The notes below the pieces were generated by a model. It made no database searches, was not told the origin of the DNA, and saw only the letters and a list, made by a program, of their open reading frames with translations. A DNA stretch of 64,000 nt. It comes from Diplonema japonicum. Its lineage: Eukaryota > Protista > Euglenozoa: Diplonemea. A program made the position numbers and the translations under genes. Shown piece after piece: positions 30,161-51,808 of this stretch; within the stretch, counting starts at the first letter, position 1, and each line of letters opens with the position of its first letter. The stretch spans positions 186,001 to 250,000 of the forward strand of contig OZ025669.1 in NCBI GenBank assembly GCA_964019335.1, written 5' to 3'.

Positions 30161-32038
30161 TTAAAGACCGCCGTACATGTCGCTGAGTACAGCGCACTGC
30201 TGGCGGGATGTCTTCATGATGCCAGGGGGGATGGCGGGGAGGCTAGATTTCGGGGCAGGTTTCGCAGGAGCTCGCGCTACTCTGGAAGGCTTGGCGGAAG
30301 GCTTTGCCGGGCGCGTGACACTATCCCTTTTCGCAGGCTTAGGAGAGGGTGGTGGTGATACGGTGTCAAGGTGCATCGTAGGACTTTTGGACAAGACGCT
30401 GAACGAAAACGAGCAAACAGCAGGTTCATGCGCCACAGGAATCACAGTGCAAGGGAAGTCTTTTTTCTTCAGCGACAAGGTAAGCGACAGCTCGGCATAG
30501 TTGCTAAACTTCAACTTCTCCGGCGTTATTCTCGACTTGCCCGCGCTCTTCACATGCACCCCTTTGCTGTTTCTAAAGGCAGCCGCCGCCATGTAACAAA
30601 CCCCTTTCACACCCTTCTCCGACTTCTGCTTTATGATGACGTGCAGCGTCGCGTCCTCATCGCAGTTGACAACGTACTGTGGTGCGGTGTTAAGTGTTTG
30701 CTTGTTCAGTGTGCCTGTTGCACTGCATTCGTGGTACTCTTTTTCCCAGTTTATTTCCTTGCATTCAAAAGGCTTCGTGGAAACCATGCTCACGGAAAAC
30801 GGAACGTGCACATCGGGGGCGTGTGCCGAGGGCACGACCAAACGCCACGCATTTGACACCGCCACCGTGTTGGCAACTATGTCCCTCTTGTTGCAGAACG
30901 TTGCGTTTGTCAACACATTCATGTTGCCTGTTACAAGATGGCTCGGGTTGGGTTCCTCACCGTCAGGGACCCCCAGCACAGTGGTCCCCAGAAGCTTGTA
31001 CTCGATAGGACCAGACACGATGCCACGCTGCTCGTCCTGTCGGACTGTTATGAACACCTCGCCACTACCGCGAATAGCATACAACGGGTTCTCTTTGAAT
31101 GTGGCGTACTGAGGTGACCCACCTGCCTTCCCTGCCTTCAGTTCAGTGGTGTAATTTGCATGAGTAGCCTTGGCAAGGTCCATAGGAAGACAAGTGTGGT
31201 ATGACTCAAAAAGACCGTCGAACTCCTTCCGCGACAGGTAGAATGTCCCCGTCGTCGGGGGCTTTGGAGAGACAACCGCCTTGACCTTTTTTGTCCAGCT
31301 TTTGGACCCCTCACACCACTGCCCCTTCCAGCTGGACGGCTTTCCTTGCGGGTCCCACAGCTCTACAATGGTCTGCACGCCTTTCGGAGTTTGGATGTTG
31401 TGGACGTTGGTAACGGCGAAGGCGTGGTTACCCGTGATGCCTGTAGTCTTCTTGCTGTGCTTGGAGGATGTCCCTACGATGCTAAGTGCATGTTTGACCT
31501 CGCGGAAGGAGGGCAGGACAGGCAGCCCGGTCATGTCGTAGAAGGCCTCCGCAATGTTGCCACCCATAATGTCCTGGAAACCGCCGTAAAATTTTGCGTA
31601 CGCCTTCTCGAGGATTGCAGGCCAGCTGGCTTCTGTTGTGGAACGCACAAACACAGGCTTACCCTTGTCTGTGAGGGGTATGTTATCGTCGACCACTACA
31701 GCGAAGCGCTTTCCGTCGCGGTAGAACTGCACTGCATACACACCGCACACGTTCACTGTCTTCGTTAGGAACATGTCCTCGATGTACCTTGGGGCCTTCC
31801 TGGTTAGAGCCCCTACTACAGCACACCAAAAACAATCCGGAAATGTTCCTTGCGTGATGTCACCGTTGGCGAACAGCTTCTCTCCTGCCGTGCCCCCTAG
31901 TCTCTTCCACTCTTTACCTTCAATGTAGTCTTGAGGACACCTTTTCCAGAAATTCGCATCGCTCACACCCCGCTTGTCACTCACGATTTTCTCTACCAGA
32001 TCCACCGCCTCCTTTACACCAAGCACGCCGTCAATCAT
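30161..32038 (-). CDS. Calpain-like cysteine peptidase (CysPc plus domain-III-like regions)
   Basis: DITQG..DCF, VVVDDNIP, WPAILEKAYAK, GG..AEAFYDMTG, NHAFAV, LWDPQG, AGGSPQY..NP motifs. Confidence 0.9.
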   Translation of the reverse strand: MIDGVLGVKEAVDLVEKIVSDKRGVSDANFWKRCPQDYIEGKEWKRLGGTAGEKLFANGDITQGTFPDCFWCAVVGALTRKAPRYIEDMFLTKTVNVCGVYAVQFYRDGKRFAVVVDDNIPLTDKGKPVFVRSTTEASWPAILEKAYAKFYGGFQDIMGGNIAEAFYDMTGLPVLPSFREVKHALSIVGTSSKHSKKTTGITGNHAFAVTNVHNIQTPKGVQTIVELWDPQGKPSSWKGQWCEGSKSWTKKVKAVVSPKPPTTGTFYLSRKEFDGLFESYHTCLPMDLAKATHANYTTELKAGKAGGSPQYATFKENPLYAIRGSGEVFITVRQDEQRGIVSGPIEYKLLGTTVLGVPDGEEPNPSHLVTGNMNVLTNATFCNKRDIVANTVAVSNAWRLVVPSAHAPDVHVPFSVSMVSTKPFECKEINWEKEYHECSATGTLNKQTLNTAPQYVVNCDEDATLHVIIKQKSEKGVKGVCYMAAAAFRNSKGVHVKSAGKSRITPEKLKFSNYAELSLTLSLKKKDFPCTVIPVAHEPAVCSFSFSVLSKSPTMHLDTVSPPPSPKPAKRDSVTRPAKPSAKPSRVARAPAKPAPKSSLPAIPPGIMKTSRQQCAVLSDMYGGL

Positions 32039-32322: not shown

Positions 32323-33663
32323 TTACAATGCCGCCAGGACTTCAGGCTTCAGCAGTGGCTCAACTAGTGACGTGTTCTTGAATATTTGAGCACTGTGTCT
32401 AGCAGAACCCCTCCACAGCTTAGGCAAGGCTGCTTGCCAGTGCTTAATCGCGGACTCCTTCACGCCGTAAGGCACAATGGTGGGGTACAACGACAGCTCT
32501 ACATCCTTGTGTGCGGTCTCCTCCTCTGTAGTTGCACCAGTCTTCTGAGTGAGCATATCGGGCATCCTCGTGTGCACCTTCCCCATGATCGCCCAGTGAT
32601 TGGAGGGAATGCCCGTTGCTGCCATCCACACTTTCCGCAGCCTGGCCTCTTCCGATCTAAACGACCTCGGCTGCCAGCATATCGTGGCGGCCAGCCGCTT
32701 CCCATTGCTCCACCCCTGATGGGACAGCCTCGAATCAAACAGCAACAGACTCCCTGCAGGGACGGGCACCCTCCTGAAGTTCTTCTTCGCAAGACCCATC
32801 ATCTTAGCCTTGAAATCCTTGTCCTGCAATTTCAAGTACGGGATGTATTGCCCGGAGGATTCCGAAGCACATGGGTCGGTCATGAGGGACTCGAAGACCT
32901 CCTTGTGGCTCTTTGGCCACACCACGGTGGTGGAGGCCGATGGGCATTCGCTGCCCCACGTGTACAGGATGCCTTGGTAGCACTTGTGCTCGCTTCCGGT
33001 GGCGTTCGTGTTGAAATCCACATGGCCCCAGAAGAGGTCTTCCTTTTTCTGCTTGTGGTGGGCGGGGTTGAAGAATACATTGTCGGTGCCCACCACAAGA
33101 TCATCAGTCCCTTCCAACAGCGAGTACACCTGACGGACGTTTGGGTTCAGACGGGAGCTCCAGGCGTAGAGACCGTGCTGTAGGCCTCTTTTCTCGGAGA
33201 ATTTGTCGTTGAAGAGGTTGCAGGCAGGCCAGTGAGAGGGGCCGTTTTGCTCAATGTCCTTGTAGACCTGACGGACGCATTTGGGGTGGCACGGCGACTC
33301 GCTGTCAGCAGCAAGGGCAAGGAGGTCTGCTTGCCACATGGCTTCGTACTGCGCTACCTGATGCTTCGGTACTACGTTTGTAATGATGGCGACACCGTAC
33401 TCTTCTAACACCTTCTTGAGTCCTGCTGCATTGTCTTCGGCAACTGTGGTCATATCAACTGTGATCTTCTTCACCTCACCGGGCCCCATCATCTTACACT
33501 GTTCGGAGCTAATCCTGTTCTCCTTGGCGTTGTCGTTCGGCTGCGGTACCTCCTTTTCGACTTTCCCTGCTTTCCAATCTGGCCATTCGCTTGAAAGAAC
33601 CCTGCTGTACCTCTCAAAGGCCTCGGATACCTTCTCTGCTGGGACTGGTGCAAATGCGGTCAT
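32323..33663 (-). CDS. PhyH-like 2OG-Fe(II) dioxygenase
   Basis: LEEYGVAII, WGHVD (HxD), YQGIL, TVVWPKSH, VPAGSLLLFDSRLSHQG (distal His), downstream Arg. ATG 33663. Confidence 0.75.
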   Translation of the reverse strand: MTAFAPVPAEKVSEAFERYSRVLSSEWPDWKAGKVEKEVPQPNDNAKENRISSEQCKMMGPGEVKKITVDMTTVAEDNAAGLKKVLEEYGVAIITNVVPKHQVAQYEAMWQADLLALAADSESPCHPKCVRQVYKDIEQNGPSHWPACNLFNDKFSEKRGLQHGLYAWSSRLNPNVRQVYSLLEGTDDLVVGTDNVFFNPAHHKQKKEDLFWGHVDFNTNATGSEHKCYQGILYTWGSECPSASTTVVWPKSHKEVFESLMTDPCASESSGQYIPYLKLQDKDFKAKMMGLAKKNFRRVPVPAGSLLLFDSRLSHQGWSNGKRLAATICWQPRSFRSEEARLRKVWMAATGIPSNHWAIMGKVHTRMPDMLTQKTGATTEEETAHKDVELSLYPTIVPYGVKESAIKHWQAALPKLWRGSARHSAQIFKNTSLVEPLLKPEVLAAL

Positions 33664-34294
33664 TGTGTATTGTTTCAAGCTTTTTCTTTTTTCTTTTTTT
33701 AATGGTTTAGTGGTATAATGGGGGGAAAAGAGTTTCTTAAAGGGGGGTGGGGGGATTAAAAAAAGGGGAAGAAGAGGAAAGTCCCACTTGCTTGTTAAAA
33801 AAAGAACTTTTTTTTTCAAAAAAAAAAAATAATAGATCGGAACGTGTCTTTTTTTTTTTCTTTTCTTCTTTTTTTTTTCTTTGTTGTTATTTTTTTATTT
33901 CTAGTATGTTTTTGTATTCTTTCTGTCTGAAAAAAAAAGGGGGGGGTGGTAAAAAAGAAAAAAAATAGATTTTGTTAAACTTACTGAAGCTTCTTTTTTT
34001 TTCTTTCATTTCCTAAAACGGAGGAACAGAAGAAGAAAAAAAAAGTAACGAGACGCAAAAAAAAAAAAAAACCGAATTGCAACAATTGAAAAAAAAAAAC
34101 ACCGCCTTTGGCCTTCATTCGTGTAAAAGCCCGCTTACACCAAGAGGGGGAAAAAAAAAAGCTCACTTTAAAAAAAAAAAAAGGGGGTCAACCTGAGATC
34201 TAAGAGGTAGTATTAAAAAAAAAAGAAAGGGTCTTCCGTTTTCAGGAATATATTTGAGGGGGGGGGGGGGGGGCTAAATCTTTTCTGTGTACTT

Positions 34295-37200
34295 TTAAAC
34301 AACAAGAGCAAGACCACAGAGAATCCAAGAGTCGATATCGGCAGCGTTGCAAGGGATGGGGAGCTGGCACAAGCATGACTCCCTAGACCTAGTGATGTAC
34401 ACCGGGACGCTAACAGACGGGGTAGTAGGGAGATCTTCTTTTTTGACGAAGCCCAAGGACACATCAGGCATTCTGTACCAAGATGTGTCATCGGTGCTAC
34501 ACTCCTGCAAGCCGTCGTTCACCCATTTTGCACCTTGCACCTGTAGCCCTTCCACTGTGACTGTCAAACCTGCTCCAGCAACGGTCCCTCCCCAATTACA
34601 CAACAATTCCATTCCCACTAAGGGGACGTTGGTAGCCCGTGAGGTCTGCTGTTTTAATGCGTTCAAGAATGTCTCCGGGCGTAGGAGCTCACTCAATTTT
34701 ATTTTTGTGTTTAGAAGACTTCCTGCCTGTGCCCTTTCATGCCACGATGCCAGCGCCACCGCCTTCATGACCAACACCTTCAAGAACGGTTCCGTCTGCT
34801 CCGGGCATTCAAACTGCTGCCATTTCACAGGCACCTCGTTCGCCAAAAGGCTTGTCGCGTCATTCTGCAGCTCCGCCGTGAGCAGCGACACACCCCGTAC
34901 CACCTTGTCGATCCCATTCATGCACACGTCCACCATTTCGATCAAGTCATGTGCCGCCGTCAGCTCATTGTACACGTAGCCCTCCACAGGGCCTGAGTTC
35001 TTCACCTTCTGGTGGCTTCGCTGCAACGCAGTTGCGTGTGGTGTACACATAGTGTTCCACTTCTGGGTGATGGGGCCTAACCTTTCCGCCCATTCCGTTT
35101 TCGACATCTTCGAAACATCCACAATCTCCTTCAGCTTCATCAGATTGTTGAGAATGAGGCGCACCTGTGTGTGTGTGTGGCAAAGCGTCTGAAATACCTT
35201 TTCCCTTTGGACCGTCCTGTCAGCGTTGGCAGGCAAACCGAAGGTGGCAGGATAGTCCATTTCAGGGAGCTGGTTGATCAAGGAAAGGAACTCCTGTGAT
35301 AGCGTGATACGAGCAAGTATGTATACCTGCTGATTGCATGTAGCAGGCACGGACACCCCCTTGGAGATAGGTTGCGGGCGCTTGTTCCCGATGCTCAGTT
35401 TGTCGTCGTTGAAATATTGCCTTTGTGAGGTGTGTTGTGCATGGATGGTGTGCATACTTCAGGTAGGTCACGAGGAGGCGGACATCGAAGTCATTGTCCA
35501 TCCTGCCACCGTAGATGGCATTCTCGAGCACCCCGTAGATAGTGGGCCAGTCGGGTGTGTCGTCGTGTGACTGTGCAGGTGATTGAAGGAGGGTACGGGT
35601 ATACCTGTGCAAGAATGACGTCTGCAGCACTGCGCAAATCAGCTGGACTGAACTCGTAGAACTTCGTCCTGTGTTGGGTGTCAATAACTTCAACTAACCA
35701 CACACCATCCTTGCGGTACGTAAGTGCGCCTCTCCAGAACCAGACCGTGGAACCACGCAAGGTTGAAGAGGATCTGGCACCTGATGGGCGTCTGCTTTGC
35801 GAGGTATTCGGGGCTCCACTGCTCGTAGGTTCGCAGCAGCGACTTCTTAATACCGGGAGGTGCCTCGAAGGTCACCTTCACAGAAGATGTGGCAAGCACT
35901 GTTGGGAAGTGGTCATGGGGCTCCGTGGTGAGCCATAGCCTGAAGTTGGTGTCAGGCTTCAGACTGTTGAGTTCCTTCTCCAGCGCGGGCACCCATGTGA
36001 TGACCAAGTGAAGGTTCTTCAGCAGCAACCACTTGCCCTCAGAAGCACACTTCCTGAGCTGTACGATGGCCTCCTCTGTCTGTCCACCACCCATAGCGAT
36101 CTGCACAAACTTGTTGCGGCCCACCTGATTGAAGGCCATTTCTTCTACTTGAAGCGAAGGGTCGGCACCCGGAGTCGTCACCATGAGAATGGCTTCGGTC
36201 GGCTCCGTGAGGTCCGCATACTGCGACATGTGAATCTCAGGAGGAGTGAGCGAGGGGAGCGACAGCGTCGCGCGCACAAAAGCATCCATCGCGGAGGTCA
36301 ACCTGTCGGGCCTCAGTGTTTGGATTAGGATAAGCTTCTGGAACGGTGTTAGGTCGCTGAGGTGTTCTGGCATGCTCGACTCAGGTGTGGTTGCCTGCAT
36401 CCACTTGTACCATGTGTCAGCTTCACGCTGTGGCTGCAGCTTTGCTTCCAAATTCGGTAGATCGCGCCTGTTGTGTTAGGCGTGAGGTAATGAGGTGAAA
36501 GAAATGACGCATACTTAAGAGCGGTAAAGGCGGTTGCTGAGTCGTGGTCTACCCAGCTTGGTACATCTGTATGGCCGCCCTGTTCGAGTGAGGAGACACT
36601 CAAGAAGAAGGTCCACTCCTTGGGATCGAACAACCTGTGGTTGAGTGGTGTGAGTGTTCTTCGCAGCATACTTGTCATAAGGAGGCGACGAACTCACGCC
36701 TTGCACCACGTGCATGCCGAACAGGAGACGGTCGTCCTGAAGCGTTTGGATGTTGATGAAAGTTAACATACCTTGAACAGACCACGCGACACCAACATGA
36801 AAATCTCCTTAAGAAGGCACTCGCTGAGGTTCTTGATTTTTTCCTCGGGTGTGGTTGCTCCTTGCGTATCGGAAAGGACCTAAGAAAAGGTTTGATTGTT
36901 GTTGTTTTGACAAATACCTGTCCAAAAGACTTAACAAACTGCGGCAGCCCGAACTGGTACATGTGGTTGACACGCGGCAGGTCAGATACAAGGAAGAAGA
37001 GCTTTGATCCCAATTTTGCGAAGGGTCTGTAGATGTTCCTCTCCTTGTCCATCTGCGCGGTGTCCTCGTTCAGCTTCGTGACCGCCTCGCTGATCTCAGC
37101 AGCAGATGTCTTGATCTTCGTCAAGGCCTCTACCAGCGACGTGTTCTCCAGGAGGGAACCCTCCGCCTGCGACAGCTGCAACAGCAGCTTCTCTTCCAGA

Positions 37201-40200
37201 CTAGCGAGCTCCGATTTGTAAGAGTCCTCTTTTTCAAGGTTGCTCTGCTTTCGCTTCTCGAGCTCTGGCTGTTCGTGGTTAATAGTGATCCCGAGGAGTT
37301 GCCCCTCGAGACCCTCTCGGGTGATGGAGAAGTTGACCTCGCTGGTGAGGGCGGCAGCATCAGGTGGAAGGACGAGGTCGGACTGCCTAGTCACTAGGTA
37401 GAGCTTAAAGGTGTCTTGCCAATCGACCAGCTTGTCGCCGAGGGGAACCACCTTCTTCGGTCCTTGAGAGATAAGATCTCTTCGCATGATGGGGTACAGC
37501 ATGGAGTCAATCCCGTCGCACTCCGACACAACAAGTGTCTTCCCGAATCTCACAGCAAGCTCAAGTGTGTGCGCGAACCTCTCATCCGCGGGTGTGGTGT
37601 ACTCCGTGTGCACATCTGTTCTCCTGTTCAAATGTTCCCGCAGCCACTTCGTTGCCTGGGATGCAGGATCGATGAAGAGCGGAGTCTGGTTAGCATCAAG
37701 CAACATGATAGCATTCTGCATCGACAGTTCATCGGCAGGAAGGCCCTCCGACTTGTACTGCAGGATGTCTCTCTCGCGCCTCATGAACCTCGTGAAAGAG
37801 AAGGTGTCCGTGTATCCAAGGTTCTCACGCCACTCGTTGATCTTCTCTTCTCTGATGTCCTCGGACGACTTTGTCAGGTACGTCAGGAAGCCTGCTGCCA
37901 TGAGACACCGCTTGGGGAGCTCTTGGAAATCCTTGTTGATGTCCGCTACTTGGTTGGCCCATCGCACATTCTCACCACCCAGCTTACCAAGAAGCTCCTT
38001 CGCCGATGCAAGCATACCTTCCGCCTTTAGCACCCCTTCTTGCAAAGAGCTCGCCTGAGCGGTTTTCATAGTGAAGTTCTTTCTCAGCTCCTCGACTTTA
38101 TCTTCCAGTTTTGTGATGCTCTTCTCCGCCTTTTTCAGCTTTGATTCCGCCGATTTCAACTTGTCTTGTGCGGCGTCGAGTTCGGTCTGCAGGGGTTGCA
38201 CCTTTTCTAGCACACTTGAGTACTCAATCTGTGCACGCACCCAACCTGCAAGAGGTGCCGCTGCGACAGAAACACGCACAATGACCTCATGTTTGAAGGA
38301 CTGCGGTTTCTGATCTAGGAGCTTCTTAACGCTGTCACGCACCTCTTGGCTGATCTGCCGGGCATCGAAGTTCAGGATCTGTTCCTTCACACCACGGGAT
38401 CCTAAGAACTTCTTCATCGACACCCATGTAGTGTCCTTGTTGCCCATGAGACTGAGAACACCCTCCAGCACATCGACAATGGCGATTGGGGGCTTGGGCA
38501 GCGACCTAATCTCGTGAAGGTGGTCTTGGTTGATCTGCCCCACCGCTTCTTTGGCTGCCTCTAGGATAGGCTTGATCTGTGCGATCTCCTTTTCGATCTC
38601 TGACTTCCTCTTTGCGATGTCTACCTGCTCCTTGCTTAGGCTCGCCTTCAGCGTCTCAGCACTTCCCTTGTGTTTACCAGCTTCCTCCATCTTTTGCTGG
38701 ATTTCTGTCAGAGCAACATCGGCTTCCTTTTGTTTCTCCCCCAAAACATGCTTTTTCTCCTCGGCCTCCTTTTTCAGCACGTCGACGTTTGTCTCCGCCT
38801 CCTGCAGCTTGGCAAGACCGTTCTGCAGTCTTGTGCGCATTTCTTCGTAAGAGTTGACCTTCCCAAACCACACCCTTTTGAAGTTTTCAAGGAAGTAACG
38901 GAACACCCTCGGGGTACTCTGAGAGCCCATGCCCGCGTGCAGCTTCAGAGTCTCACCTGGCAAGTCAAATACAATGCCCAGAGCCCTCGGGGAACCCACT
39001 TCGTTTTCGGGCTCACCCCCATCCTTCTTCGGCTGCAGCTCCTTAACGATCTCCTTCAGTATGGTGTCTGGGACGCGCTTCATGCCGCTGGTGCTCCAGG
39101 TGCCCATCCACAGCACCTGAGCCCGAGTGTACAGAGACGGGTTCGACTGACACCTGTACTCGTACTTGGGGTTCGTGTGATCCATCGACACTGCAAAGTG
39201 GAGGTACTTCCTAATGCGCGAGATGAAGAAGTTGTAGACGCCACCGAAGAAGCCCTCGTTCGAAGCCTCTTCTTTCAGAGGGGCCAGCAAGGGGTCCAAC
39301 TCCTCTGGGGTGAAAAGCCCCGGGGACTCACCCCCTGCTAGCAGTGAGTTGATGATCTCCAGGAAACCAGTGTCCACAATGTTGTGATCCTCGATAAACA
39401 GCACACAGTGCTCGCCCTGCACGCCGGCCACCGTCACGATGTTCTTGATTTCCGTCTTGAATTCACGCATCCCATAGTCGCGCGTCATCTTCAGCTCGAA
39501 CAGCTGCATCCTCAGAGCATAGGCACACAGGAACACAACCTCCCTCCTCCCGACACCCGACCTGCCGCAAAGGAGCATGGAGCCACCATCCGTGGACAGC
39601 ACCCTGTCAACACGCGCAATCCACCCTAGGATCTCAGGCAGCAGCACAATGTCCAGGGATTTGATCTCGCGCTCGTGCTGCAGGAGACATGTTGAAACCT
39701 GCTTCTTGTAGTCTTTGTATTCTACGGATTGCAAGATGCCTCGTGTCAACCACGACGTGAAGAATCTATCTCCTTCCCTCTCTCTCTTGGTGTATCCCAT
39801 TACGGATGAGAGGTGCTCTCCCAGCAGGTCGTTCACCCGCTTTCGGTTCTCCGTCTTCGTCAGCCTGTCTGCGAAGATGCGCTGCCCCTCGTAGTACACC
39901 ACGTCGGCCAAGTCGTTATTCTCAAGGTCGTAACGCAGGAGGTTGATGACCCATGCCGTCAGGTCGCGAGGGTTGAAAACGTAGTGCGACGCGTCATCGA
40001 CGGTCCACCTCTTCTTCACTTCCGCGTACACCTGACACATGACACGAGAAAGGTCTGACCCTCTACCACCCCCACTCTTCTGAAGCTTGGGAGACGAAAG
40101 GAGTGTCTGCAGATACTCCGTGTAGATGAGGTTGAGAGACTCTTTATCCGGGTACGCTACAGACAGAACAGAGATGATGGCAACGAACCGAGGTGCAAGG

Positions 40201-43200
40201 TCGTAGCGTCCCACAGAACCCGAGGGGTTCATGGTGCACACAACTTGCACGTTCTCGACCCTAATCCACTCGAGATCTTTGTCGTAGAAGCCATTGTACA
40301 AGATGATTTGCTGCAGGAAGGAGTGGGCCTGCACCGTGCCGTACATATCGGGCTTCGGCAGGTTAATGTCTTTCAGCAACAAAACAAGCCTCTCGCAGTC
40401 CCTGGGGCGCAGGCACGGGCCTTCTGCAGTGGAAATCCTTGTGCACATCTGCTTAAGCTTCTGCTGGACATGAATCCCCTCGGTCTGTGCAGAGCAGCTA
40501 ATCGCAGCTACCTTGACGCCTTTAGTATTCTCCAAAATGGACATCACGGACGAGCTCTTCCCGCAGCCCTCTGGCCCGACTAGCAAGAACGGGCGCACTG
40601 TTCCGCTCGTTACCCACGGTTTGAGGATGTCAAAGTTCCTCTGCACGTCAACAGTGTGCACCATGGTGCTGTTTTTCAGGTCGTCCAACGAAATGTCTTG
40701 GCTGCCTGCGTCATATTCATACTTCGCGTACTTCCCGTCAATCGTGAAGGTGTCAAGGAGGTTCCCGCGTGGTGGTCTCTCGTTCGTCAAGTCGAAGATG
40801 TTCCTCGCGTAATCCTCACGCTCCGTCACATTCAGCAGGGATCCCAGCCCTCGCACCAGACCAATCGTGAAATCAGCCTTCGTCTGCACTCCCGTGAGAT
40901 GCGACAGACCTGTCGTCACAATACCCATACGGGTCGTAACGACAGCGTGACCTTTCATGTCGAGCAGCATGTTGATAGCTTTGTAGAAGTAGTCCTCGAG
41001 CCACTGGCCCAGGCTGTGTGTTGCAGTGACGTTGTCGTCCTGCTTGGCAAGCCACGTGCTGACAGCAGACTTGGGGTCGACGTCTTCCTCGCTCAAGAAG
41101 ATCATCCCGACACGACTGACGGTGGCAGGTGAGGCGAAGCTGAGGGAGTGTGTCTCGAAGACGAAGTTCACGTTGGGCCCAAACTGGATACGCTCACCGT
41201 TGGGCATCGTGAGCAGCTTGTTATCGTCGAGCACAGAGTTCAGCGACTCCACCCACTCAGGGTCCACGTCACCGTCACACAGGATCCACGACTGCACTGT
41301 GCCATCGGTGGGCTCTTTCACAACCTTCCTGGCGGCGGCAGTCAGGACACCGTCCGTCCACTCACGGGTGTCGGTGTCCATGTTACCTAGAAGCTGCTGA
41401 CGCGGCATAGCCTTCGGGTTCATCACGTGGAGCGGAACACGGATTTTCAGCTTCTCCATTGCGTGCCTCAAAATCTGCAGCAGCGTCGACTTTCCTGACC
41501 CACTGGGCCCCACGATGACAACACCCATTCGCTGTTTCAGAGCCTCGTACAGCTGTAGTATCTTCTCAATTTGAATGTCAATGCGCTGTAGTTTCGCTTC
41601 GGTGATGGCTTCGTTGATAGCCGGCAACAGATCTTCGTACTTGATCTCCTGGATTGGGATGCCTGGAAAGACATCGCCGATTAGGGAGTTGAACAGCCGG
41701 GTGTCGTCGAAGGCCAGCTTTGACAAGGTGTTAACTCTCAGGGACTGGATCACAAGACCTTCCTCGAGTTCCTGCGTTTGAGCTGTACCATCGTCTTTGT
41801 GTTCTTTGCACCATTTAGTCACAAGGTTCCCGCAGAGGGAGAGGCATGTCTTGATGGCACGGAGACCCCAGTCGTAGTGCTGCTGCGCGGAGAGAAGCTG
41901 TTTCGATAGTTTAAAGGTGGTGACGATCTTCTTCGAGATTGGGGATGCGTGGACAAAGCCTTCGCTGAGGAGGATGGTCTCAGCAATGAGGTTCAAGTCG
42001 GGCACAGACATCGCCACGGCACGGAAGAGCTGCTTCAAGTTGTCGGGGAGCTTGGAACGTCCTCCGTAACCCTTTCCAGCCGGGTTCAATGTCACGAAGA
42101 TCCCTGCGTTGTGGTTTACATCGATCCTGCGGTTCAGAAGGTCACACTCGCTCTCCTTGTTCTTGATAGCAGCTTGGATCACCTGGATCATCTGGGAGAT
42201 GGCGGACAGCTGGTCCTCCTTCAGACGGTTAAACTCATCGAAGCACCCCCAAGCACCGCACTTCACAAGCCCCACGAAAATCCTCCCCATCGACTTGAAG
42301 TCAATGCCCTCGTCGCAGTTGAATACCAGTACCTGTCTCCCCAGCGCATTCCCGAGCGCCTTCACAGACTCGGTCTTCCCAGTACCGGCTGGCCCATAAG
42401 GGTTTCCACCATAACCCAAATGCATACCCTGGGTCAGGGTGAGGTAGCACTTGTCGGTCAAGGGAGTGTGCACAAGCTTCGGAGCGTTTCCTTGGTATTC
42501 AAACGTGTAGTCGAAGCAAGCGTCCACCATGTGCACCTTGCAGGGGTTTGTCTCTTCTTTCAGGTAGAACCTGAGCTGCTTCTGCCAGAACCAGTCGGTC
42601 TCGGACTTCACATTCTTCTCCACCAACTGGTCAACGACGTCGATGCAATGAATGAGGTCCATGATGAGCGCCTTCATCTTAAGAACGGTGACAATGTCCT
42701 CTGCAGAGGACTTGGACTTCGTGTTTGTCTGTAGCCTTGTCAGGAGCTCGGTTTTCAGATCTGCCAAACGGAACTGCTTGATTGCCAGAGCAGTCTTCTG
42801 CGTCCAGTGAATCAGCTCAGACAGACACAGAAGCTGAGACGGGAACTTGAAAAGGTCGTTCTCCTTCACGCAGTTCCACAGCATGTTCGTCATCGTATTC
42901 CTCATCTCCCTGTCTAACTGTGCCAACCACACCTCGACATCAGCGGTCACAGCAACCTCGTTCGACAGCGGCACCACTTCGCCGTCTAGAGACACCATCG
43001 CAGAGATCTTCTCCTTGTTGTCATCGAACTGCACTTTGTTGATCCCAGAAAAGAGCTTCTTCAAGTGGTTCTGGATGACACTTGGGTTCTGCGACTGCCC
43101 CAGAATCTCCAGCAAGTCGTCATCACCGATGAAGTAGAATCTCGGGAACTTGTCACGCTTCTGCTCAAGGTACTCGTTCAGGGCTTTTTGACACCTGTCA

Positions 43201-46200
43201 AGCTGCTCTAAAATGGACTTCAGGCTCGTCCCAATGTCACGCTTTGCTAGCTCGATGACACGTGGGTCGCTTTCAATGTCTCTCATGATCTCCATGAAGG
43301 TCTTGTCCACCCTGCGGAACCGAGGTTGTTCTTGCGGAAGCGCACCCCTTGCGAAGATGGGTTCAAGGTAAACCCATTTTCTTTGGATCTGCATGAGTAG
43401 GTGGAGGAACTCATCAAGTGCCACGAACTTATCCTCCCAAGAGTTAGCCTCTCCCGAGAACGCCTGGTAGTAAGGGGAGTCCTTAAGGGAACCCAGCAGC
43501 GATTGGTTGTCGCCCACATGCATCAGCAGCTCCTTCCATTCCTTGATGAGACAAATATTTCCACTCATGCAGTGCTGTGGTGTCGACAGGTTGAACTCCG
43601 CCTCGTGTGCCCAGGCACGGATCTCGGCCAACGCTTCGCGGATTTGGATCTCACCTTGTGCCCTTGCATGGAGCCCCTTGAGATCCTTTTCGTGCTGTGA
43701 AATAAACTCAGCCTTATCAAGGAAGTGCCCAAAGGTCAACTTCTCAGGGATCACCTCATGCCTGTCGATGTTAATGTATCTAAACATCTCAGCCCAATGA
43801 TCTAGTGTCATGCCGTCACCTCTGCAGAATTTGAACAGCGGCAGCGTGTTCGTCCATAAGTCCAGCTGGCCGCGGAGGTAGATCACAACGTCGTTAGTGG
43901 GCTTCTCCTTCAGCTTCTCCTTCCACTCCTTGGTGAAGTCATCGAACCTGAAGACTTTTGACCTGAAGGCGAACCAGTTCTCTTTCTTGAACTCATCGAC
44001 CTCTCCCGTGAACTTCTCGTATAGTGCCCACACCGTCGAGAGACTGGTGACATCCTCACGGACTTCTTGCAGTTTTGTCATGTTCGGCTCGTCGATCTTA
44101 AAGTACTGGCACTGCTCTACCACTTGTTGTCCTCGCTTGTCAAAGTCGTCAAGCTCCCCTTGTCTGTCTTTGATGAATTGCAGTGCGCCCCCAATGGCGA
44201 CAGGGTCCTTCAGCGACGACATGTCTTTAGGCTTTTGCTCCTTCCACAGCTCGCAGAATCCCTCAAGCTCGCTGAAGTATTTCTCGATGTCTCTGCTTAC
44301 CTCATTCCTTAGCCTGGCGATCTGCTCCTCCATTATCTGCTCGTGTGCCGTTAGTAGATCGTCGAAAGCGCCTAGCTTCGATTTCGTAGAAGTCCCGTCA
44401 ATCGTAGCGCCAGCTGCCTTTTTGTACAGGTTGCTCTTGTCATCGAACTGCTTCATGAGGCGCTGGATAGGCTCTTGCCGCTCTTTCATCTCTTGATAGG
44501 CCTTGTTTGCTTTTCCAATGTCTTCCAGTGTCGTAGGGCTCTCGTTCAACTTTGAGATGGCGTCAGACAAGAAGGTGTCAACATCTTGAAGGTGCTGCTC
44601 GGCAGCCTTCTTCAGTGAGTGGTTAAGAAGCTGCCCAAGTCTCGAAAGATGGTCTTCAATGGCAGCCTTGATGGGGACGGTTGAGATGTTGAAGCAGTCG
44701 ATTTTGATAGTGTCTTCCAAGCTTCCGATCTCCTTCCCCTTCGACTTCAGCATCTTGAAGTTCTTCTCCCAGTCACCTACGTCGATGAGCAGATCCACCC
44801 ACTGGTCGAGGTCGACTAGGCCGAGCACCACGTATTCCTTGAACTTCTTTTTTACCTTCGAGAGCCTTGCGAACAACGCTTCGGTTTTGACGAACACAGT
44901 CTCGATGCCGCTCTCGTTTCTCTCTGCCATTAGCTTGAAAATCTCGCTCTCACCCACACCCTTGAACGACATAGGGATCGCAATGAAGTCCCTGATGTTC
45001 CTGTAATAGTGCTCCCTAATCTTCTCAAACACGGGATCAAACTGGATCTGGCCTTGCTTGAAGCACAGGTTCACGTGAATCTCGGGGAGGGACTCATTCA
45101 GAGTTTCCAACCCCACAAGGTACTGGTGCTCGAGTGCCTTGTACAGCTGGTGGTCCCAGTGACGCTTCCACGCACCTGTCGCGCGGTAGCCGTTCTTTTC
45201 CAAGTCAGCAAACTTGCCCCTCATCTCTTTCAGCACCACCTTCCACTTGTCGATGTTCTTAACGAGGTCAATATCCATAAGACTCTTCACAAGCACGATG
45301 AACTCGTCGTGCACCTTGCGTAGCCTCCTATTCTCTCTTGTCAGTATCTCGGCAGCCTCCTTCAGCTTCAACGTGAACGCATCAGCCTCGTTCTTGTCTC
45401 CCCACGAGATCTGGCTCTTCGCGCCCTTTCCCTTCACAACATTCTCGAAATTCACGATCGGTTTTTCCAACAGTGTAATAGTGCTGGGGATAAGCTGCCT
45501 GTCTAGGGTGTTGTAGAAGTTCGCAACCTGCTTCAAAACTGTTGCATTTCTGTAGAAACGCAAGGCATCCTGCGCAACCTTCTGGATGGGCACAGGCACT
45601 GCATAACCGAGGGACAGGAGCTGGCGAACCTCACGTGTCAGTTCAACTAACTTTTCGCTGAAATTGACTAATAGCCTGCCGTCCTTCTTGGCGATCTCCA
45701 TGATGCGCCCTTCCATCCTGAGCGTGAGAGCGCTAGAGTTGCTTGTAACATGTCCTATGCTCTCCTGCACCTCTGTGATCCACGTGCCGAAGGTTTCTGA
45801 TTCGAACTCCTTCAGGTCGTTAAGCAGGTTGTTGCACTGCACATTAAACTGATCAAACCTCGCAAGGTCGTGGAGGAGCGTCTTTCCTGACTTCTGCACG
45901 TATTCGATTTTCCTCCGAAGCTGCCGCGCCCACACAAGGTTGTTCAGCACGACGGGCATGTTCCTCCCCGCCTGCAGCCTCTTGTCCTCCAAGTCACCTG
46001 AGCCGGTAATGTCATCTCGTCTGTACTTCGCTTCGAATTCTGACTTCAAGCCGTTGATGCTCTCGGACAGTTTCGCTAGAAGGTTGTCTCTTTCGCTTGT
46101 AAGTTCTGCCCCAATGGTAGGCCTGTTAATAATATCGCTGAACTTCATGAATCCCTGCAACAGTGCTTGTGCGTTGCTGGACACTCGGGCAAGCTCCTGG

Positions 46201-47399
46201 CGCAGTCTCCCCGCCGACCTCTGCTCGATCGGCTCCAGCCTTTGTTCGAACTGCTTGACGGCTTTCTCCCACGTCCCTTGGTTAGCAGCCTCCACGTTGA
46301 AGACGTCGATGTCGCTGAAGGACTCGAACGCACTGTCGATCTTCCTCTTCATCTCCATCAGCTCTTGTTTGCTGAGGAGCTGTGCGAGCTGTTCAAATGT
46401 GTTTCTCAGTCGCAGGATAGTCTCGAGCCGTTTGCCCACTGCTTGGATGTTCGCATCCTGATGGTGAGGACCCTGCCATTCATGCCAATCGACACTTGTG
46501 AGCGTTTTCGTGATGTGTATCCATTTTTCGCATGCAACCATCGACAGCTCAAGGCTCTGCCTGACCTGCGCATACTGTCCCTTCCAGATAGTGTCCTCTT
46601 TGGAGTCGGTCGAAGTGTTTAGCTTGCTTCGTATAAAGTCGACAAGCCGCCCACCGACAGTGCTCAGTACATAGCCTGCTTTCCGCTCAGAAACTGTCTT
46701 CCCGCGGTACCAGTCGTTGACCTTGTCTTGCACAACTTCAAGTGCGTCGGGCAGCTCTTCAAGCGGCGGCCATTCGGCAGGTACTACCTGATCGATCTCG
46801 GTGGTGTCGGTGAGGTTCATTAAGATGTTCGAGAAGTCTACTACACGGATTTGAAGGGACACAGAGTCACCATATACGGTGGATGAAATCACCTGCTTGC
46901 CAAGGATGATGAGGTCGGACCTCTTGCCAGTGACGCCATCCTTTGTGGAGAGCACATCCGGGAAGTCTACGATGAATGTAGGGCTGTTGAACTGGTGGAC
47001 GTACTCCTCGAGCAGCTTCTCAAGCACCATTCGCGTGTTGTCGTCGTCGGGGAAGGCCAGCTGTGACTCTGAAGGGAAGTGGCTGTGCATGGCCTTCTCC
47101 ATGAAGGACCTGAACGTGTCCTTCTTGTATCCAGGAGAAAAGTCTAGCTCAACCCCAGTCGTGTTCTCTCTCGTGTATACAATTTTGTTGGTCGCAGCAG
47201 ACTGCAAGTCTTTCACCATTGAAGCTACCAGCTTCTCCATCAGCTCAATCGAGCCATCGATCGTCGCACCTGCCTTGTTCCACTTGTATTCTGCCACGCC
47301 CCCCGCTTCGTCTTGCGATGCCTGCGCGTCCCTGCTTCTCAGCAAGTGTTCCGCAGCCTTCCCCAGTGCTATTATCATCCCATCTAAGCTGCCGGACAT
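34295..47399 (-). CDS. DYNC2H1: Cytoplasmic dynein-2 (IFT dynein) heavy chain; 9 introns near the 3' end
   Basis: P-loops GPAGTGKT, GPSGSGKS, GPEGCGKS and the dynein-2-type GRSGVGRR; FPRFYFIGDDDLLEILG; C-terminal AAA6 motifs. Introns 36880-36917, 36737-36771, 36635-36671, 36468-36514, 35669-35705, 35571-35604, 35421-35457, 35294-35326, 35165-35197 join the ORF pieces. Confidence 0.93.
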
Positions 47400-47444
47400 T
47401 GTTCGTATCAAGGCCCCCTCCCCACTGCGGGTTCCTGTCTTGCT

Positions 47445-47480
47445 GTTTAGAAAGTGAGAAAAAGTGCAATAGGTTAAAGT
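47445..47480 (-). promoter_or_regulatory. Probable SL trans-splice acceptor (pyrimidine tract + AG) for the dynein gene
   Basis: Minus strand reads ..tgcactttttctcactttctaaacag, ending 43 nt before ATG 47399; similar pyrimidine+AG acceptors precede BILBO1 and the CNB gene. Confidence 0.5.
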
Positions 47481-47503: not shown

Positions 47504-50500
47504 CTAAAGTGCAATCTTGAGTGATTTAAAACTCTTTACAAGTCCCGAGTACAGGAGACGGTCGTCGAGGTAGGCGGCAGGCTCTTGGTGCAGCCTGACG
47601 GCCACAATGGAGAGAACCCCCGCCACAAGTGCAGAGGCGTCAAATATGGGCGTGGTGTGTGTCACAACATTCTGGTTGAGAATGTCGGAGATGAGGTCCA
47701 GCTTCGTGTACTCTTCAACATGCCCCTTGAATACATCACGCAGTGTGGGAACGTGTCGCGCCGCCCCACTCTGTGGCCTCCTGCGGCTGAGGACAATTTC
47801 AGTGAACGCATCAGGGTTGTCACCATCATGTAAAGGCGCAGCAACGCGTGCGGGGAACATAACCTTCGGCAACGATGTCCCTTTATGGTTCACTGCATGC
47901 CGTGTACCAACCTTCCTACACGCTAGAGGCGACTTTGGACGAGGCTTGATACTTTCCAAATTAGAGTAGGTGCACACTTCCGAGTTGTACCTGTCCACTT
48001 CCTCCTCAAATGGTTGGACATGCAAGCGCGGAGCAGTTGCATACGGCACCACCATCCTAATATCAGAACCTGTGTTCTGCACGGACAAGGGCTCAGGGTA
48101 ATTCGGCGGCTTCAGTCGCAAGTAGATTCCATCAAATTCCGTGACAACTGCGTGTGCAAGGATCGGCGGGTCGCGCATCACGATTTGCACCTCGCTGCCC
48201 GGCTGGAACCGCCGGAAGGGAGCTTCTACGTAATTGTCATCTATCTCCCACAACTGGCCCTTTCCGAATACCCCTACCTGCTTCGACTTCTTGTCACTGC
48301 CACGGAAGTCTGCTATCGACAGCCTACTGTAAGTCACTGTTGGTGGCGACGCGGTCCTTCGCTCATGAGTCGACGTAGCCGAAGGCGGCCTTGACACGAG
48401 CAGAGGTCCACCTAAGGTACTCAAAGCACTTCCCATGGTCACCTTCTTTCCCGGCGATGGCAGCCGTGGTGTCAGGTGCTCAGGAAGCGCTTCATTTGTC
48501 TGGCTGTAGGCACACTTCGCAGAGGGCCGGGCACGGGGCGTGGCTAGTGTTACACTAAGCTCATTCAGTGCGATGCTTGGCTTATCAAGAGTATTCCGCC
48601 TATCAGAACAGATAACATGCAGAGGAGGAGGAGGAGGTGGTGGTGGTGGTGGTGGAGGTGGTGATGGTGACGGCTGGTCAAGAGGAACAGGAGACACAGG
48701 CTCATAGGAGCGGTCTGAAAAAGCTGATGTGTGAGAGAGTGTCCTTTGTATAAGGGCGCGATCATCCACCAAAGTAGACTTTCGGATGGCAGTGTGGACA
48801 GTGGCGCTATCGGTCCTGTCCCCTTCCCTATCCTTTGAGGCTGCCAGCAAACCGCTTATGGTCTTCTCGAGCCGCTCGATTTTATCAAGCAGTACTATTT
48901 CAGTTTTTGCAGCAGCGGCGATCTGTTCAAGCAGCTTCCGTGTTTCGGCCTTCTCGTCGAGGAGGTTGCCCACGTGGTCCATGACGTTCTTGTTCTTATC
49001 GGCAGAAATTGTATTGAGTACGTTCATTGACTCCACCAGGTTGCACATACGATCACCTGAGACCTGCACTTCGATCTTTGCCAACTGCGCTATCTTTGTG
49101 AAGTCCCCAAGCTCCCTCTTCCGTGCAGCCCTGTTGGCCTCATCCAGCCTAGCGACGATCTCCTCTGCTTCGTGAATGCTGCCAGTACTAGTCGCTTCGC
49201 TGTGCTCCTTCAAAAGCTGCTCACGCAGAGTTTTACTTTTGTTTTTTCGTATCCTTGCAGAGACCGTGTTCCGGCACTTCTGCAGAGTTATGACTGTAGA
49301 ACGCTTTCGCAAGTCATTCTCTTTTTCTTCTAATTTCTTCAATTGCAATTTGTCCTCATCGTTGGCAGAGCTGTACAACTGGTCGATAGCCGGCACGACA
49401 ATTCTATTCTTCAAACTAATGCAGTTTTGCCTCAATTGAGTAGTGCTCATTTTGGTCACTTCTTTCGCTGTGTCTTGTGGTGCAGCCTGCGTGGAGGACT
49501 GTTCTTGGTGGCTTAGCTCAACGCCCATTTTCCGTATCTCCATTGCCTGCTTTTTCAACTGTTGCGTCAACCTGGTAACCTCTAACGTTTGATAAAGTTC
49601 CTCTTGCTTGTTCCTCTGCACAAACTCATAATATGACGAAAGCATGGTTGCTTCTGCTTGCCAGTACTTCTGCACGTTAGCCTGCTTGTCGGCAGGCATG
49701 GCCTCAGTCGCCTTGTTACTCGGATTGAAGGCTTTCATGGCTGACACTTCAGATGGCAAACCACACTTCATTAGCTCAAGGCCGCCCTCACAATAAAGGG
49801 CTAAGTATCTCTTCATGAACACAATACTCAGCTCAGCTGCCTCGAGACTGTCTCTGGCCACAAGTGCGTCTTCCTTAATAGCAGCGGACTCCTTCTCCGC
49901 ATTTTTCAGTTCCTTCTCTAATTGCGCTGCACGAAGAAGGTACTTGTTCTCTGGTACAGAAAGCTCGATATCTAGTAGCTTTCTGCAGATCTCAGGTATC
50001 TTGCTGTCGACGATATGAGCCTGTCCCAGCATAAAGTAGCTCAGGAGTGCAGACGAGTATTTCCAGATGGACTCGCGGCAGTCGGCTTCCTCATCGTGGC
50101 AGCACGCCTGCCGCACGACGTCCACTGTTCCTAGCACAGTCAGCACGTCGTTGCTGAAGCTCGTTAGTGCCTTTGTTTGCTCACTTTGTGTCTGTGTAAG
50201 CTTTTGAGTTAGATCAGCAAGCTGAGACTGTGCATCGTAGGCTGCTTTCTTTTCGGCCTCTAAAGTATCGGTCATCTGGAACAACTGTGACCTGAGCTGG
50301 TGTAGTTCCTCTTCCTTTTTTACTCTGTATTCTGCCACCTTCTTGCGCTCTTCGTCTACCGCTTTCTCAAGCTGCTCTGCGGTGATCAGCAGCTTTGCTT
50401 CCTCCCTGAGTTGTGCGTTGTCGGCCACGAGACTGGACACTTCTGCCTCCAATTCTTCAGTGGCCTGCTCGGTTTTGTCAGCCATCTCCTGCATGTCAGC

Positions 50501-51733
50501 GAGTTGGTTTTCCTTCTTCAATAGGAGCTTCCTGAAGCCAGATACACACTCGTCCCTTTCCTTGAGCTCGGTGCAGATCTCGTCACGCTCGCATGAGATC
50601 TCCTCCACTGCCTTTTCGAGGGTTTTTAGCTCTCGTGTGTGGTCCATCCTCAGGGACTCCATGCATGATCTCATCTCTTGCAGTTTCTGTTGCTGTGTAG
50701 TGATGACTTCCCTGTCCTCCGAGGTCTGCTCGCGCAGCTCACGGCGGATGTCTTGCATCAGTGTCTTGATGTCAAATTCAGGCAGCCGTTCTTCGATAGG
50801 AGCACCCCAATCATCGGTAAAGCCTATCCCTGTAGTCAGCACACGCATCTCTTCCTGTACTCGCTTCACTAGTTCGTTTCTCAGGTGCAGCTCAGAGTGC
50901 AAGATGGCCTGGTTTTCCCTGTTTTTCGAGTCGATAGCCTCTATCCTTCCCAGCAGGGACATGATGTGCTTGTTCTTCTCGTCCATCATGCCAGTGACGT
51001 TGATCTCACTCTCGAACTGCATCACAGTTGAGTCTTTGCTCTCTTTGCTCTTCTCTTCTGTATCGGGGGGCAAGGTGGAGTGGTTTGGGCAGCTTATGGT
51101 AGTCTGGCACTTCTTCGGCTTGGTGACGGGTATGGTGCGCGCTATCTTATTCTGCTGGGACCTTGCGTAGTCAATGAGGTCCGCTCCGAACTTTTGTGTC
51201 TTCTTCGTGAGGTGGGCGACGTCGTAGGTGTGCTGTTCGACGATGGTGCTGCTTGTGCGTGCTTCTGTCTCCTCTTGTTGAACTTCGGCAGTGCGTCGCT
51301 CAGTGAGCTGAACTATATCCTCGTCAGAACAGAACCCCATTTTGTCCACCCAGGTCAGGATCTCCTTCTCGAGTCCCTCACGACAGCTGCCGTCGTACCT
51401 TGCTGTGAGCAGTTCGCTCACATCAGCCTTAGAACCCAACAGCTCGAAGTTTGCCGACACCACGTCATCGCTCAGCATCATCAAATACTTCTCTTGCATG
51501 AACTGCGGCTCCCTCTTCATGCTATCTATCATCTGTCCCCTTAAATCACATCGCTCGATTGATTTATCAACCATCCCCTCCACTTCCCACGTGCCCCTCA
51601 ACGCCACCTCCCGCCCTGACCCTGGGAACATCACCCCAGCATGCTTTACAAGTCTGTTGTACCGGTCGATCTCTTTGTCGCACTTGTTATCGAACTTCTT
51701 TGTGCTTGGCGACAAGAGCCATTCGTTGGGCAT
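47504..51733 (-). CDS. Large coiled-coil protein of unknown function (~1,410 aa)
   Basis: 4.2-kb ORF with E/K/Q-rich heptads, a poly-Pro tract (~48621-48660) and a small globular-looking C-terminal segment; first in-frame ATG 51733. Confidence 0.8.
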   Translation of the reverse strand: MPNEWLLSPSTKKFDNKCDKEIDRYNRLVKHAGVMFPGSGREVALRGTWEVEGMVDKSIERCDLRGQMIDSMKREPQFMQEKYLMMLSDDVVSANFELLGSKADVSELLTARYDGSCREGLEKEILTWVDKMGFCSDEDIVQLTERRTAEVQQEETEARTSSTIVEQHTYDVAHLTKKTQKFGADLIDYARSQQNKIARTIPVTKPKKCQTTISCPNHSTLPPDTEEKSKESKDSTVMQFESEINVTGMMDEKNKHIMSLLGRIEAIDSKNRENQAILHSELHLRNELVKRVQEEMRVLTTGIGFTDDWGAPIEERLPEFDIKTLMQDIRRELREQTSEDREVITTQQQKLQEMRSCMESLRMDHTRELKTLEKAVEEISCERDEICTELKERDECVSGFRKLLLKKENQLADMQEMADKTEQATEELEAEVSSLVADNAQLREEAKLLITAEQLEKAVDEERKKVAEYRVKKEEELHQLRSQLFQMTDTLEAEKKAAYDAQSQLADLTQKLTQTQSEQTKALTSFSNDVLTVLGTVDVVRQACCHDEEADCRESIWKYSSALLSYFMLGQAHIVDSKIPEICRKLLDIELSVPENKYLLRAAQLEKELKNAEKESAAIKEDALVARDSLEAAELSIVFMKRYLALYCEGGLELMKCGLPSEVSAMKAFNPSNKATEAMPADKQANVQKYWQAEATMLSSYYEFVQRNKQEELYQTLEVTRLTQQLKKQAMEIRKMGVELSHQEQSSTQAAPQDTAKEVTKMSTTQLRQNCISLKNRIVVPAIDQLYSSANDEDKLQLKKLEEKENDLRKRSTVITLQKCRNTVSARIRKNKSKTLREQLLKEHSEATSTGSIHEAEEIVARLDEANRAARKRELGDFTKIAQLAKIEVQVSGDRMCNLVESMNVLNTISADKNKNVMDHVGNLLDEKAETRKLLEQIAAAAKTEIVLLDKIERLEKTISGLLAASKDREGDRTDSATVHTAIRKSTLVDDRALIQRTLSHTSAFSDRSYEPVSPVPLDQPSPSPPPPPPPPPPPPPLHVICSDRRNTLDKPSIALNELSVTLATPRARPSAKCAYSQTNEALPEHLTPRLPSPGKKVTMGSALSTLGGPLLVSRPPSATSTHERRTASPPTVTYSRLSIADFRGSDKKSKQVGVFGKGQLWEIDDNYVEAPFRRFQPGSEVQIVMRDPPILAHAVVTEFDGIYLRLKPPNYPEPLSVQNTGSDIRMVVPYATAPRLHVQPFEEEVDRYNSEVCTYSNLESIKPRPKSPLACRKVGTRHAVNHKGTSLPKVMFPARVAAPLHDGDNPDAFTEIVLSRRRPQSGAARHVPTLRDVFKGHVEEYTKLDLISDILNQNVVTHTTPIFDASALVAGVLSIVAVRLHQEPAAYLDDRLLYSGLVKSFKSLKIAL

Positions 51734-51808
51734 GCCCCCCTCTGTGTGGTGTTGGTTTGTCTCATTTTTTACCCACAATAATAAATCCAGAAATCCGGAA
51801 GCGGGCGG

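Follow-up and report, generated by a model that had tools for sequence, protein, structure and literature searches.

A degenerate lysyl-tRNA synthetase-like domain at the N-terminus of the Diplonema japonicum dynein-2 heavy chain

The dynein-2 (IFT dynein) heavy chain of Diplonema japonicum, part of the motor for retrograde flagellar transport, begins with a degenerate class II aminoacyl-tRNA synthetase (aaRS) catalytic core that derives from lysyl-tRNA synthetase (LysRS). This module comprises residues 1-207 of the protein (46779-47399, minus strand; coordinates are those of the window, the whole stretch of 64,000 nucleotides of contig OZ025669.1 that was analysed) and is recognized by profile comparison, by hhalign and by superposition of an AlphaFold2 model. 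The homology is robustly supported, and the reuse of synthetase cores outside translation is already known; for the combination of a LysRS module with a dynein-2 heavy chain we found no published description. Taken as a whole, the explanation that fits best, to which we give a probability of roughly 0.6, is that a dead domain of LysRS origin replaces the N-region of the sole dynein-2 heavy chain (DHC2) of this organism, where it most likely serves as a dimerisation domain.

A first-pass annotation, made from the letters of the DNA, had placed a dead synthetase module at the N-terminus of an IFT dynein, and the claim is now borne out at the level of sequence, profile and predicted structure as well as by orthologues and by a transcript contig. 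The segment that it had marked, 46779-47297 on the minus strand, is real and corresponds to residues 35-207 when counted from the ATG at 47399; its own numbering, 39-211, had been counted from a TTG at 47411.

Relation of the module to lysyl-tRNA synthetase

Used as a single sequence in a phmmer search of 177,635 PDB sequences, residues 1-260 find LysRS in each of the best eight matches, human LysRS with an E of about 1e-3 (22 bits) and that of Loa loa with 0.4. In Pfam, tRNA-synt_2 (PF00152) alone matches residues 1-240, over residues 50-150 and with an E of 0.0062, its score of 16.1 bits lying under the gathering threshold of 25 bits; the NCBIfam lysS models reach E values of 0.07-0.12. The genome encodes its own class IIb synthetases, AspRS on contig C98 and LysRS on contig C46, against which the module can be compared directly. 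A Smith-Waterman alignment of residues 1-215 with the genome's own LysRS scores 82, as against 35 +/- 5.3 for 500 shuffles (z 8.9; 0 of 500 as high). Profiles of the module were built from nine diplonemid species, including that of the window and counting Namystynia, together with Euglena gracilis and, later, the environmental protein P0042. The family HMM of 11 N-regions matches the genome's own LysRS with 37 bits (E 2e-8 at Z=177,635, a PDB-sized search space), and hhalign with a 12-member profile gives 95.9% and an E of 2.9e-9. Controls for hhalign stay between 0.0 and 2.6%, 30 shuffled LysRS sequences reaching at most 2.6% and canonical DHC2 N-regions against LysRS 0.0%. Given that the signal grows from single sequence to profile and is specific to LysRS, it reflects true remote homology. 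The phmmer alignment runs through the same collinear blocks that the first-pass annotation had listed. An origin of the module from AspRS or AsnRS was considered and rejected: the family HMM finds no match in the genome's own AspRS, for which hhalign gives 2.2%.

For the Smith-Waterman, HMM and hhalign comparisons the exon pieces of the genome's own LysRS had been joined with X, and the test was then repeated exon by exon. The exon 3 piece matches the profile at positions 123-176 (27.4 bits; hhalign 89.6%) and the exon 2 piece at positions 40-106 (13.6 bits; hhalign 78.8%), the two in collinear order. The exon 1 piece, which carries the OB domain and motifs 1 and 2, does not match the module profile, and the match of the 30-residue motif 3 piece from exon 4 is not significant by sequence alone. 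Three short introns, some of them A-rich and each roughly 45-70 nt in length, interrupt the genuine LysRS gene itself (about 1362-3184 on the minus strand of L003, G000:C46:351328-355035), which for this reason appears as several ORFs in different frames; most genes in the window appear intron-free, unlike this gene. Outside the PDB, a phmmer search with the module against 1.84 billion representatives yields three true clusters only, all of them diplonemid DHC2s, its other matches being multi-stretch and of low complexity. An ESM Atlas look-up with the module returned only sub-threshold, unrelated clusters.

The predicted fold points to the same family. AlphaFold2 models of residues 1-240 were made without templates, one from 7 aligned sequences (pLDDT 75, pTM 0.69) and one from 12 (pLDDT 83, pTM 0.77, all five models at 79.6 or above). 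Foldseek against the PDB gives, among the matches listed, LysRS chains only, with an E of about 1e-8 and at least 155 matches at E<1e-3, the outcome that the first-pass annotation had expected for the N-terminal residues. VIA, a search independent of Foldseek, likewise ranks LysRS first among 48,161 representatives (Z 12.1 and 11.5), followed by AspRS, GlyRS, GenX, AsnRS and AsnA; every one of its top 49 entries is a catalytic core of the class II aaRS type, be it a synthetase or AsnA, GenX, HisZ or Pol gamma B. With the pLDDT 83 model the best 50 chains in VIA are all LysRS, Z reaching 15.8 for the Plasmodium enzyme and 15.7 for the human one (186-187 residues aligned), and eukaryotic LysRS (14.4-15.8) stands above bacterial LysRS (13.6-14.4). 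Model residues 1-196 superpose on residues 239-561 of human LysRS with 187 residues aligned, an rmsd of 3.1 A and 19% identity. The predicted model has a class II catalytic fold, an antiparallel sheet with helices on its flanks, that can be superposed on LysRS. Of the known proteins, the catalytic domain of eukaryotic cytoplasmic LysRS (class IIb; human KARS1, PDB 3BJU; same fold, 187 residues, Z 15.7) comes closest, and it has in common with the module the collinear blocks CEFYW, DFxPPFRR, NPTFIxDxP, RFELF and LTDxxxIxEVxxFP.

Judged from the model, the module is the whole LysRS catalytic core in compact form: loop deletions have taken away about 130 of its about 335 residues, which leaves about 205. 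The first-pass annotation had assigned the segment to the LysRS catalytic domain, which stands; the module is not limited, however, to the part after motif 2. Residues 1-41, where motifs 1 and 2 had not been evident to it, do lie over the beginning of the LysRS catalytic domain in the predicted structure. The first element, an N-terminal helix of residues 5-21 (47337-47387, minus strand) assigned by DSSP on the model, is where the LysRS superposition starts, at human residue 239, which we take to lie in the motif 1 helix of the dimer interface. By this superposition helix 5-21 would be the motif 1 dimer-interface helix of LysRS, whereas hhalign places it on the helix before motif 2, with low confidence there. 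HMM, hhalign and model together place a motif-2-like beta-hairpin at residues 26-41 (47277-47324, minus strand), in which AEYKW (residues 36-40) lies opposite CEFYW of LysRS. Residues 47-136 (46992-47261, minus strand), covered by the HMM and by the exon 2 piece, are what is left of the insertion that separates motifs 2 and 3 in LysRS, LDFSPGYKK standing opposite IDFKPPFRR. The core strands follow at residues 141-185 (46845-46979, minus strand), the part matched by the exon 3 piece; here PTFIVDFP aligns with PTFICDHP and GKRSDLIILGKQVISS with TERFELFVMRKEVCNA. Family alignment and structural superposition identify a helix corresponding to motif 3, with the NLTDT stretch, at residues 186-205 (46785-46844, minus strand).

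The residues on which catalysis depends in LysRS have largely gone. The position of the motif 3 arginine is N191 in the window protein, and across the 11 family members the residues found there are N, S, R, S, G, Q, S, N, N, S and T, the arginine being gone in 10 of them; motif 3 had already been called lost in the first-pass annotation. The tyrosine of CEFYW, which stacks on lysine, is variable in the module family, the second active-site glutamate is Q, P or R, and the asparagine of KEVCNA is S. In the region of motif 2, hhalign pairs LLRSRD with NFRNEG, shifted by one residue and at low confidence; many members have R or K at this place, but the glutamate is not conserved. On the other hand, the glutamate of CEFYW is kept in most family members as E37, and R-x-E of LysRS ERFELF corresponds to R160-x-D162, both residues of which are invariant in the family. 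The N-terminal OB-fold anticodon-binding domain is absent, the protein starting at the equivalent of the catalytic core. With the arginine of motif 3 and several of the residues that bind substrate gone, and lacking an anticodon-binding domain, the module is, judged from its residues, a pseudoenzyme that cannot aminoacylate tRNA. R160, D162 and the mostly conserved E37 could be part of a pocket that is still in use.

The dynein-2 heavy chain gene and its transcript

The module opens a complete dynein-2 heavy chain gene at 34295-47434 on the minus strand, which was delimited by its Pfam domain set and by tblastn at its 3' introns. The long ORF runs on the minus strand from 47411 (TTG) or 47399 (first ATG) down to 36678. 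In Pfam it contains DHC_N1 (from residue 264), DHC_N2, AAA_6, AAA_5, DYNC2H1_AAA_dom, AAA_7, AAA_8, MT and AAA_9, of which DYNC2H1_AAA_dom is specific to dynein-2 and MT is the stalk. AAA6 and the C-terminal parts (Dynein_heavy, AAA_lid_11, Dynein_C) are found in the minus-strand ORFs 35693-36451 and 34298-35455, and tblastn with the C-terminus of D. papillatum shows the reading frame changing across short GT..AG introns in the interval from about 36.9 kb to 35.4 kb. Since the missing C-terminal domains are found in the downstream ORFs and the frame changes at introns, the gene is complete, with its stop codon at 34295-34297. The first exon is very long and extends, counted from the ATG (47399), as far as about 36.9 kb; the short GT..AG introns cluster in the last ~2.6 kb of the gene, the first ~10.5 kb forming a single exon.

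The window protein matches the DHC2-specific family PF21264 and falls among the DHC2s of the tree; in phmmer, residues 1-900 have human DYNC2H1 as their best PDB match (6sc2/6rla, E 4e-150). This alignment does not set in before query residue 213, which is paired with residue 423 of the tagged chain 6sc2_A, and from there residues 213-900 (44700-46763, minus strand) form the start of an ordinary dynein-2 tail that is collinear with the human protein (query 213-900 against chain 423-1111). The chain length of 6sc2_A, 4513 residues, suggests an N-terminal tag of ~206 aa; if so, its residue 423 would be about residue 217 of the native protein. The tail homology starts right after the module, as the first-pass annotation had stated. 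From residue 213 on, the window protein is like canonical DYNC2H1 (PDB 6RLA/6SC2) in tail, linker, six AAA modules, stalk and C-terminal domain. Searches of the window's own genome find neither a second DHC2, which makes this gene the sole one, nor a second copy of the LysRS-like module.

Are module and tail expressed as one RNA? A contig of 6.2 kb from one public run (X7) covers 45600-47435 and continues for ~4.4 kb further. It ends at 47435 with a loose end of 16 nt, the reverse complement of which is GTTTCTGTACTTTATT. The genome has 169 copies of GTTTCTGTACTTTATT followed by G and GT, as against 0 in the reversed control; GTTTCTGTACTTTATT is therefore the 3' end of the spliced-leader exon. 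The spliced leader at its end is the ground for taking the X7 contig as derived from RNA, and because this contig runs uninterrupted across both, module and dynein tail lie on one RNA-derived contig. Across 46779, where the first-pass annotation had called for transcript reads, this contig runs on into the tail and shows no chimeric join. Contig end and genome count set the AG acceptor of spliced-leader trans-splicing at 47435-47436 (minus strand), the mature mRNA starting from 47434; a polypyrimidine tract, read directly from the sequence as cactttttctcactttct, lies upstream of it at 47449-47466 (minus strand). The 5' UTR that contig and sequence define, 47400-47434 (minus strand), is 35 nt long and without an ATG. 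The stop codon of the upstream gene, estimated at ~100 nt from the gene in the first-pass annotation, is at 47504-47506, 104 nt before the ATG. Three other runs contain the module stretch in one piece or nearly so, and nine further orthologues, mostly from independent transcriptome assemblies and three of them from genome assemblies, have the same start methionine and the same architecture (that of D. ambulator is truncated at its 5' end). A chimeric join of module to dynein is excluded by the contig bearing the spliced leader and by the independently assembled orthologues.

Several observations on the surroundings of the gene were made along the way. The spliced-leader exon end with its donor (GTTTCTGTACTTTATTG, then GT) is present in 169 copies across the genome (G000; for instance at L006-L008), scattered over many contigs and often near contig ends, not in one tandem array. 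In run X1, which comes from a different organism, two short contigs are 95-99% identical to the module region at 46640-46878 and 47168-47422, with a one-base insertion beside the ATG; their source is probably a closely related strain or species. Upstream, in the same polycistron, lies a gene for a 1424-aa protein (47507-51778, minus strand) without a Pfam match at E<=0.001. The downstream neighbours, at 30164-32038 and 32326-33819 on the minus strand, encode a protease of the calpain family (Peptidase_C2, E 1e-41) and a protein whose weak PhyH-like match falls a little short of the cut-off.

Replacement of the canonical N-region and distribution of the module

In a set of 60 DHC2s, about 205-220 residues precede the conserved tail anchor in nearly all full-length sequences, euglenozoan or not. 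The module family shows no similarity to 40 canonical DHC2 N-regions (hhalign 0.2-0.3%), and the family HMM does not match the non-euglenozoan DHC2s sampled, including that of the heterolobosean Willaertia. Another 40 eukaryotic DHC2s lack the module and have equally long but unrelated N-regions. By its equal length before the tail anchor and its lack of similarity to the canonical N-region, the module is a replacement of the usual ~215-residue N-region and not an addition in front of it. Compared with canonical DYNC2H1, the first ~210 residues of the window protein are of the same length but unrelated (hhalign 0.2%) and LysRS-derived. The usual N-terminal domain had been reported as not evident in the first-pass annotation, and the value of 0.2% against the 40 canonical N-regions agrees. 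That the canonical DHC2 N-region might itself be aaRS-like was considered and rejected: it gives 0.0% against LysRS, and there is no dynein chain among the structural matches of the module.

A survey of other euglenozoan DHC2s, also proposed at the outset, finds the module in nine diplonemid species (counting Namystynia), in Euglena gracilis and in the environmental euglenozoan P0042. The closest proteins are the diplonemid DHC2s of D. ambulator, D. papillatum, Rhynchopus, Lacrimia, Flectonema and Sulcionema. Homologue searches based on a word index brought up no DHC2 from kinetoplastids. In a DHC2 tree from a quick IQ-TREE search the window protein is sister to that of D. ambulator, with which it shares 88% identity over the tail, and the deeper order is Willaertia,(Euglena,(P0042,diplonemids)) with SH-aLRT values of 99, 99, 81 and 100. 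P0042 is a JGI/IMG environmental protein of 4232 aa on a 20-kb contig, and its module is divergent (30 bits; 22% identity). It sits on a long branch inside Euglenozoa as sister to the diplonemids, the position in which kinetoplastids are expected, and its source may be a kinetoplastid or another deep euglenozoan lineage. With diplonemids, Euglena and P0042 sampled, the simplest reading is that the module was probably gained once, on the euglenozoan stem.

Possible roles of the module

What would a dead synthetase core do at the end of a transport motor? In the course of events that we propose, the catalytic domain of a eukaryote-type LysRS became the ~205-residue N-terminal domain of the DHC2 of this diplonemid. 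It has kept a compact class II fold, with N-terminal helix, motif-2-like hairpin, insertion remnant, core strands and motif-3-like helix, and has shed the anticodon-binding domain along with the arginine of motif 3 and most of the residues that bind substrate. Placed directly before the conserved tail, in the slot of an unrelated N-region of equal length, it would join the two heavy chains of the DHC2 homodimer via the class II dimer interface. Its co-option as a unit of dimerisation, cargo binding or RNA binding, put forward in the first-pass annotation, is plausible. Of these, dimerisation appears the most likely function of the module, given that class II synthetase cores are obligate dimers and that dynein heavy chains are held together in pairs at their extreme N-termini; with a single DHC2 gene in the genome, the context is that of a homodimer. 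Since hhalign puts helix 5-21 elsewhere, retention of the canonical interface helix is not certain.

The module may instead be a binding platform that docks adaptors or proteins of the IFT train, or that pairs via the class II interface with the genuine LysRS or with partners of this enzyme, a reading that we consider possible but rather unlikely. It is suggested by the exposed N-terminus of the tail, by the presence of a different domain at the same place in non-euglenozoan DHC2s, by the invariance or near-invariance of the surface-facing blocks NLTDT and PxEWP, and by the intact LysRS that the genome has kept as a possible partner; however, nothing separates binding from dimerisation, and the two roles are not exclusive. 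Less probable again is a regulatory sensor on the motor that binds a small ligand or RNA such as lysine, ATP, Ap4A or tRNA. Consistent with it, R160 and D162 are invariant and aligned with R-x-E of the LysRS active-site strand, E37, mostly kept, aligns with the lysine-binding glutamate, and GCN2, another aaRS-like pseudoenzyme, binds tRNA. Yet the motif 3 arginine, which class II enzymes need for ATP binding, is missing in 10 of the 11 members, the positions of the second active-site glutamate and of the asparagine have changed to Q/P/R and to S, and both the anticodon-binding domain and about 130 residues of loops are gone. We hold it improbable, too, that the full scheme applies in which the swap took place on the stem, the class II interface joins the chains and R160, D162 and E37 possibly bind a ligand, tRNA or the genuine LysRS; were such binding at the remnant site true, flagellar transport would be coupled to a metabolic or translational signal.

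Hardly credible is the view that the arrangement is an artefact, either an assembly or gene-model chimera or a chance likeness in a fast-evolving but ordinary dynein N-terminal domain. The scores of the single sequence are weak (E about 1e-3; Pfam below cut-off) and the length of the module equals that of the canonical N-region, as such a view would have it. It is refuted by the contig capped with the spliced leader, which spans module and tail and with which three other runs agree, in one piece or nearly, by eleven orthologues from independent assemblies with a common architecture, by a signal that rises with the profile while the controls stay flat, and by a structural Z of 15.8 that is given by LysRS exclusively. 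The preferred reading remains a LysRS-derived domain that took the place of the canonical N-region and most likely dimerises.

Class II cores that do not charge tRNA have been recruited before, in the HisRS-like domain of GCN2, in the GlyRS-like accessory subunit of Pol gamma, and in HisZ, PoxA/GenX and AsnA. They are reused for dimerising, regulation or binding, and several are among the structural matches of the module. In none of them is a core of LysRS origin joined to a cytoskeletal motor; PoxA/GenX, although LysRS-like, is a free-standing enzyme, and the module is far more compact than all of these cores. From LysRS itself the module differs in its length of about 205 as against about 335 residues, in the lack of the OB-fold domain, in the loss of the motif 3 arginine and several substrate ligands, in its fusion to a dynein tail, and in a Pfam score below threshold. 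It is thus a new case for the short list of aaRS cores recruited outside translation. Throughout eukaryotes, the tails of dynein heavy chains are generally taken to consist of domains specific to dyneins. Euglenozoa, a phylum-level lineage that includes the very abundant marine diplonemids and, as regards the module, possibly the trypanosomatid parasites, appears to have swapped the N-terminus of its IFT motor for a domain of a translation enzyme, which provides a natural experiment on what is required of a dynein N-terminal domain.

Full-text literature searches, both on aaRS-like domains of dynein heavy chains and on the N-terminus of euglenozoan IFT dynein, found nothing relevant. The nearest account concerns the trypanosome IFT dynein heavy chains DHC2.1 and DHC2.2, the N-terminal parts of which are described as highly divergent, with no aaRS domain mentioned (PMC4148251). 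Like the DHC2 of the window they belong to a euglenozoan IFT dynein with unusual N-terminal parts; kinetoplastids, however, have two heavy chains that form a heterodimer (PMC4148251), whereas this diplonemid has one DHC2 gene. Under the full scheme held improbable above, divergence of the module could also be the basis of the obligate DHC2.1/DHC2.2 heterodimer of kinetoplastids. The module is a lineage-specific feature of the flagellar assembly motor, one that would be of importance should it occur in kinetoplastid parasites too.
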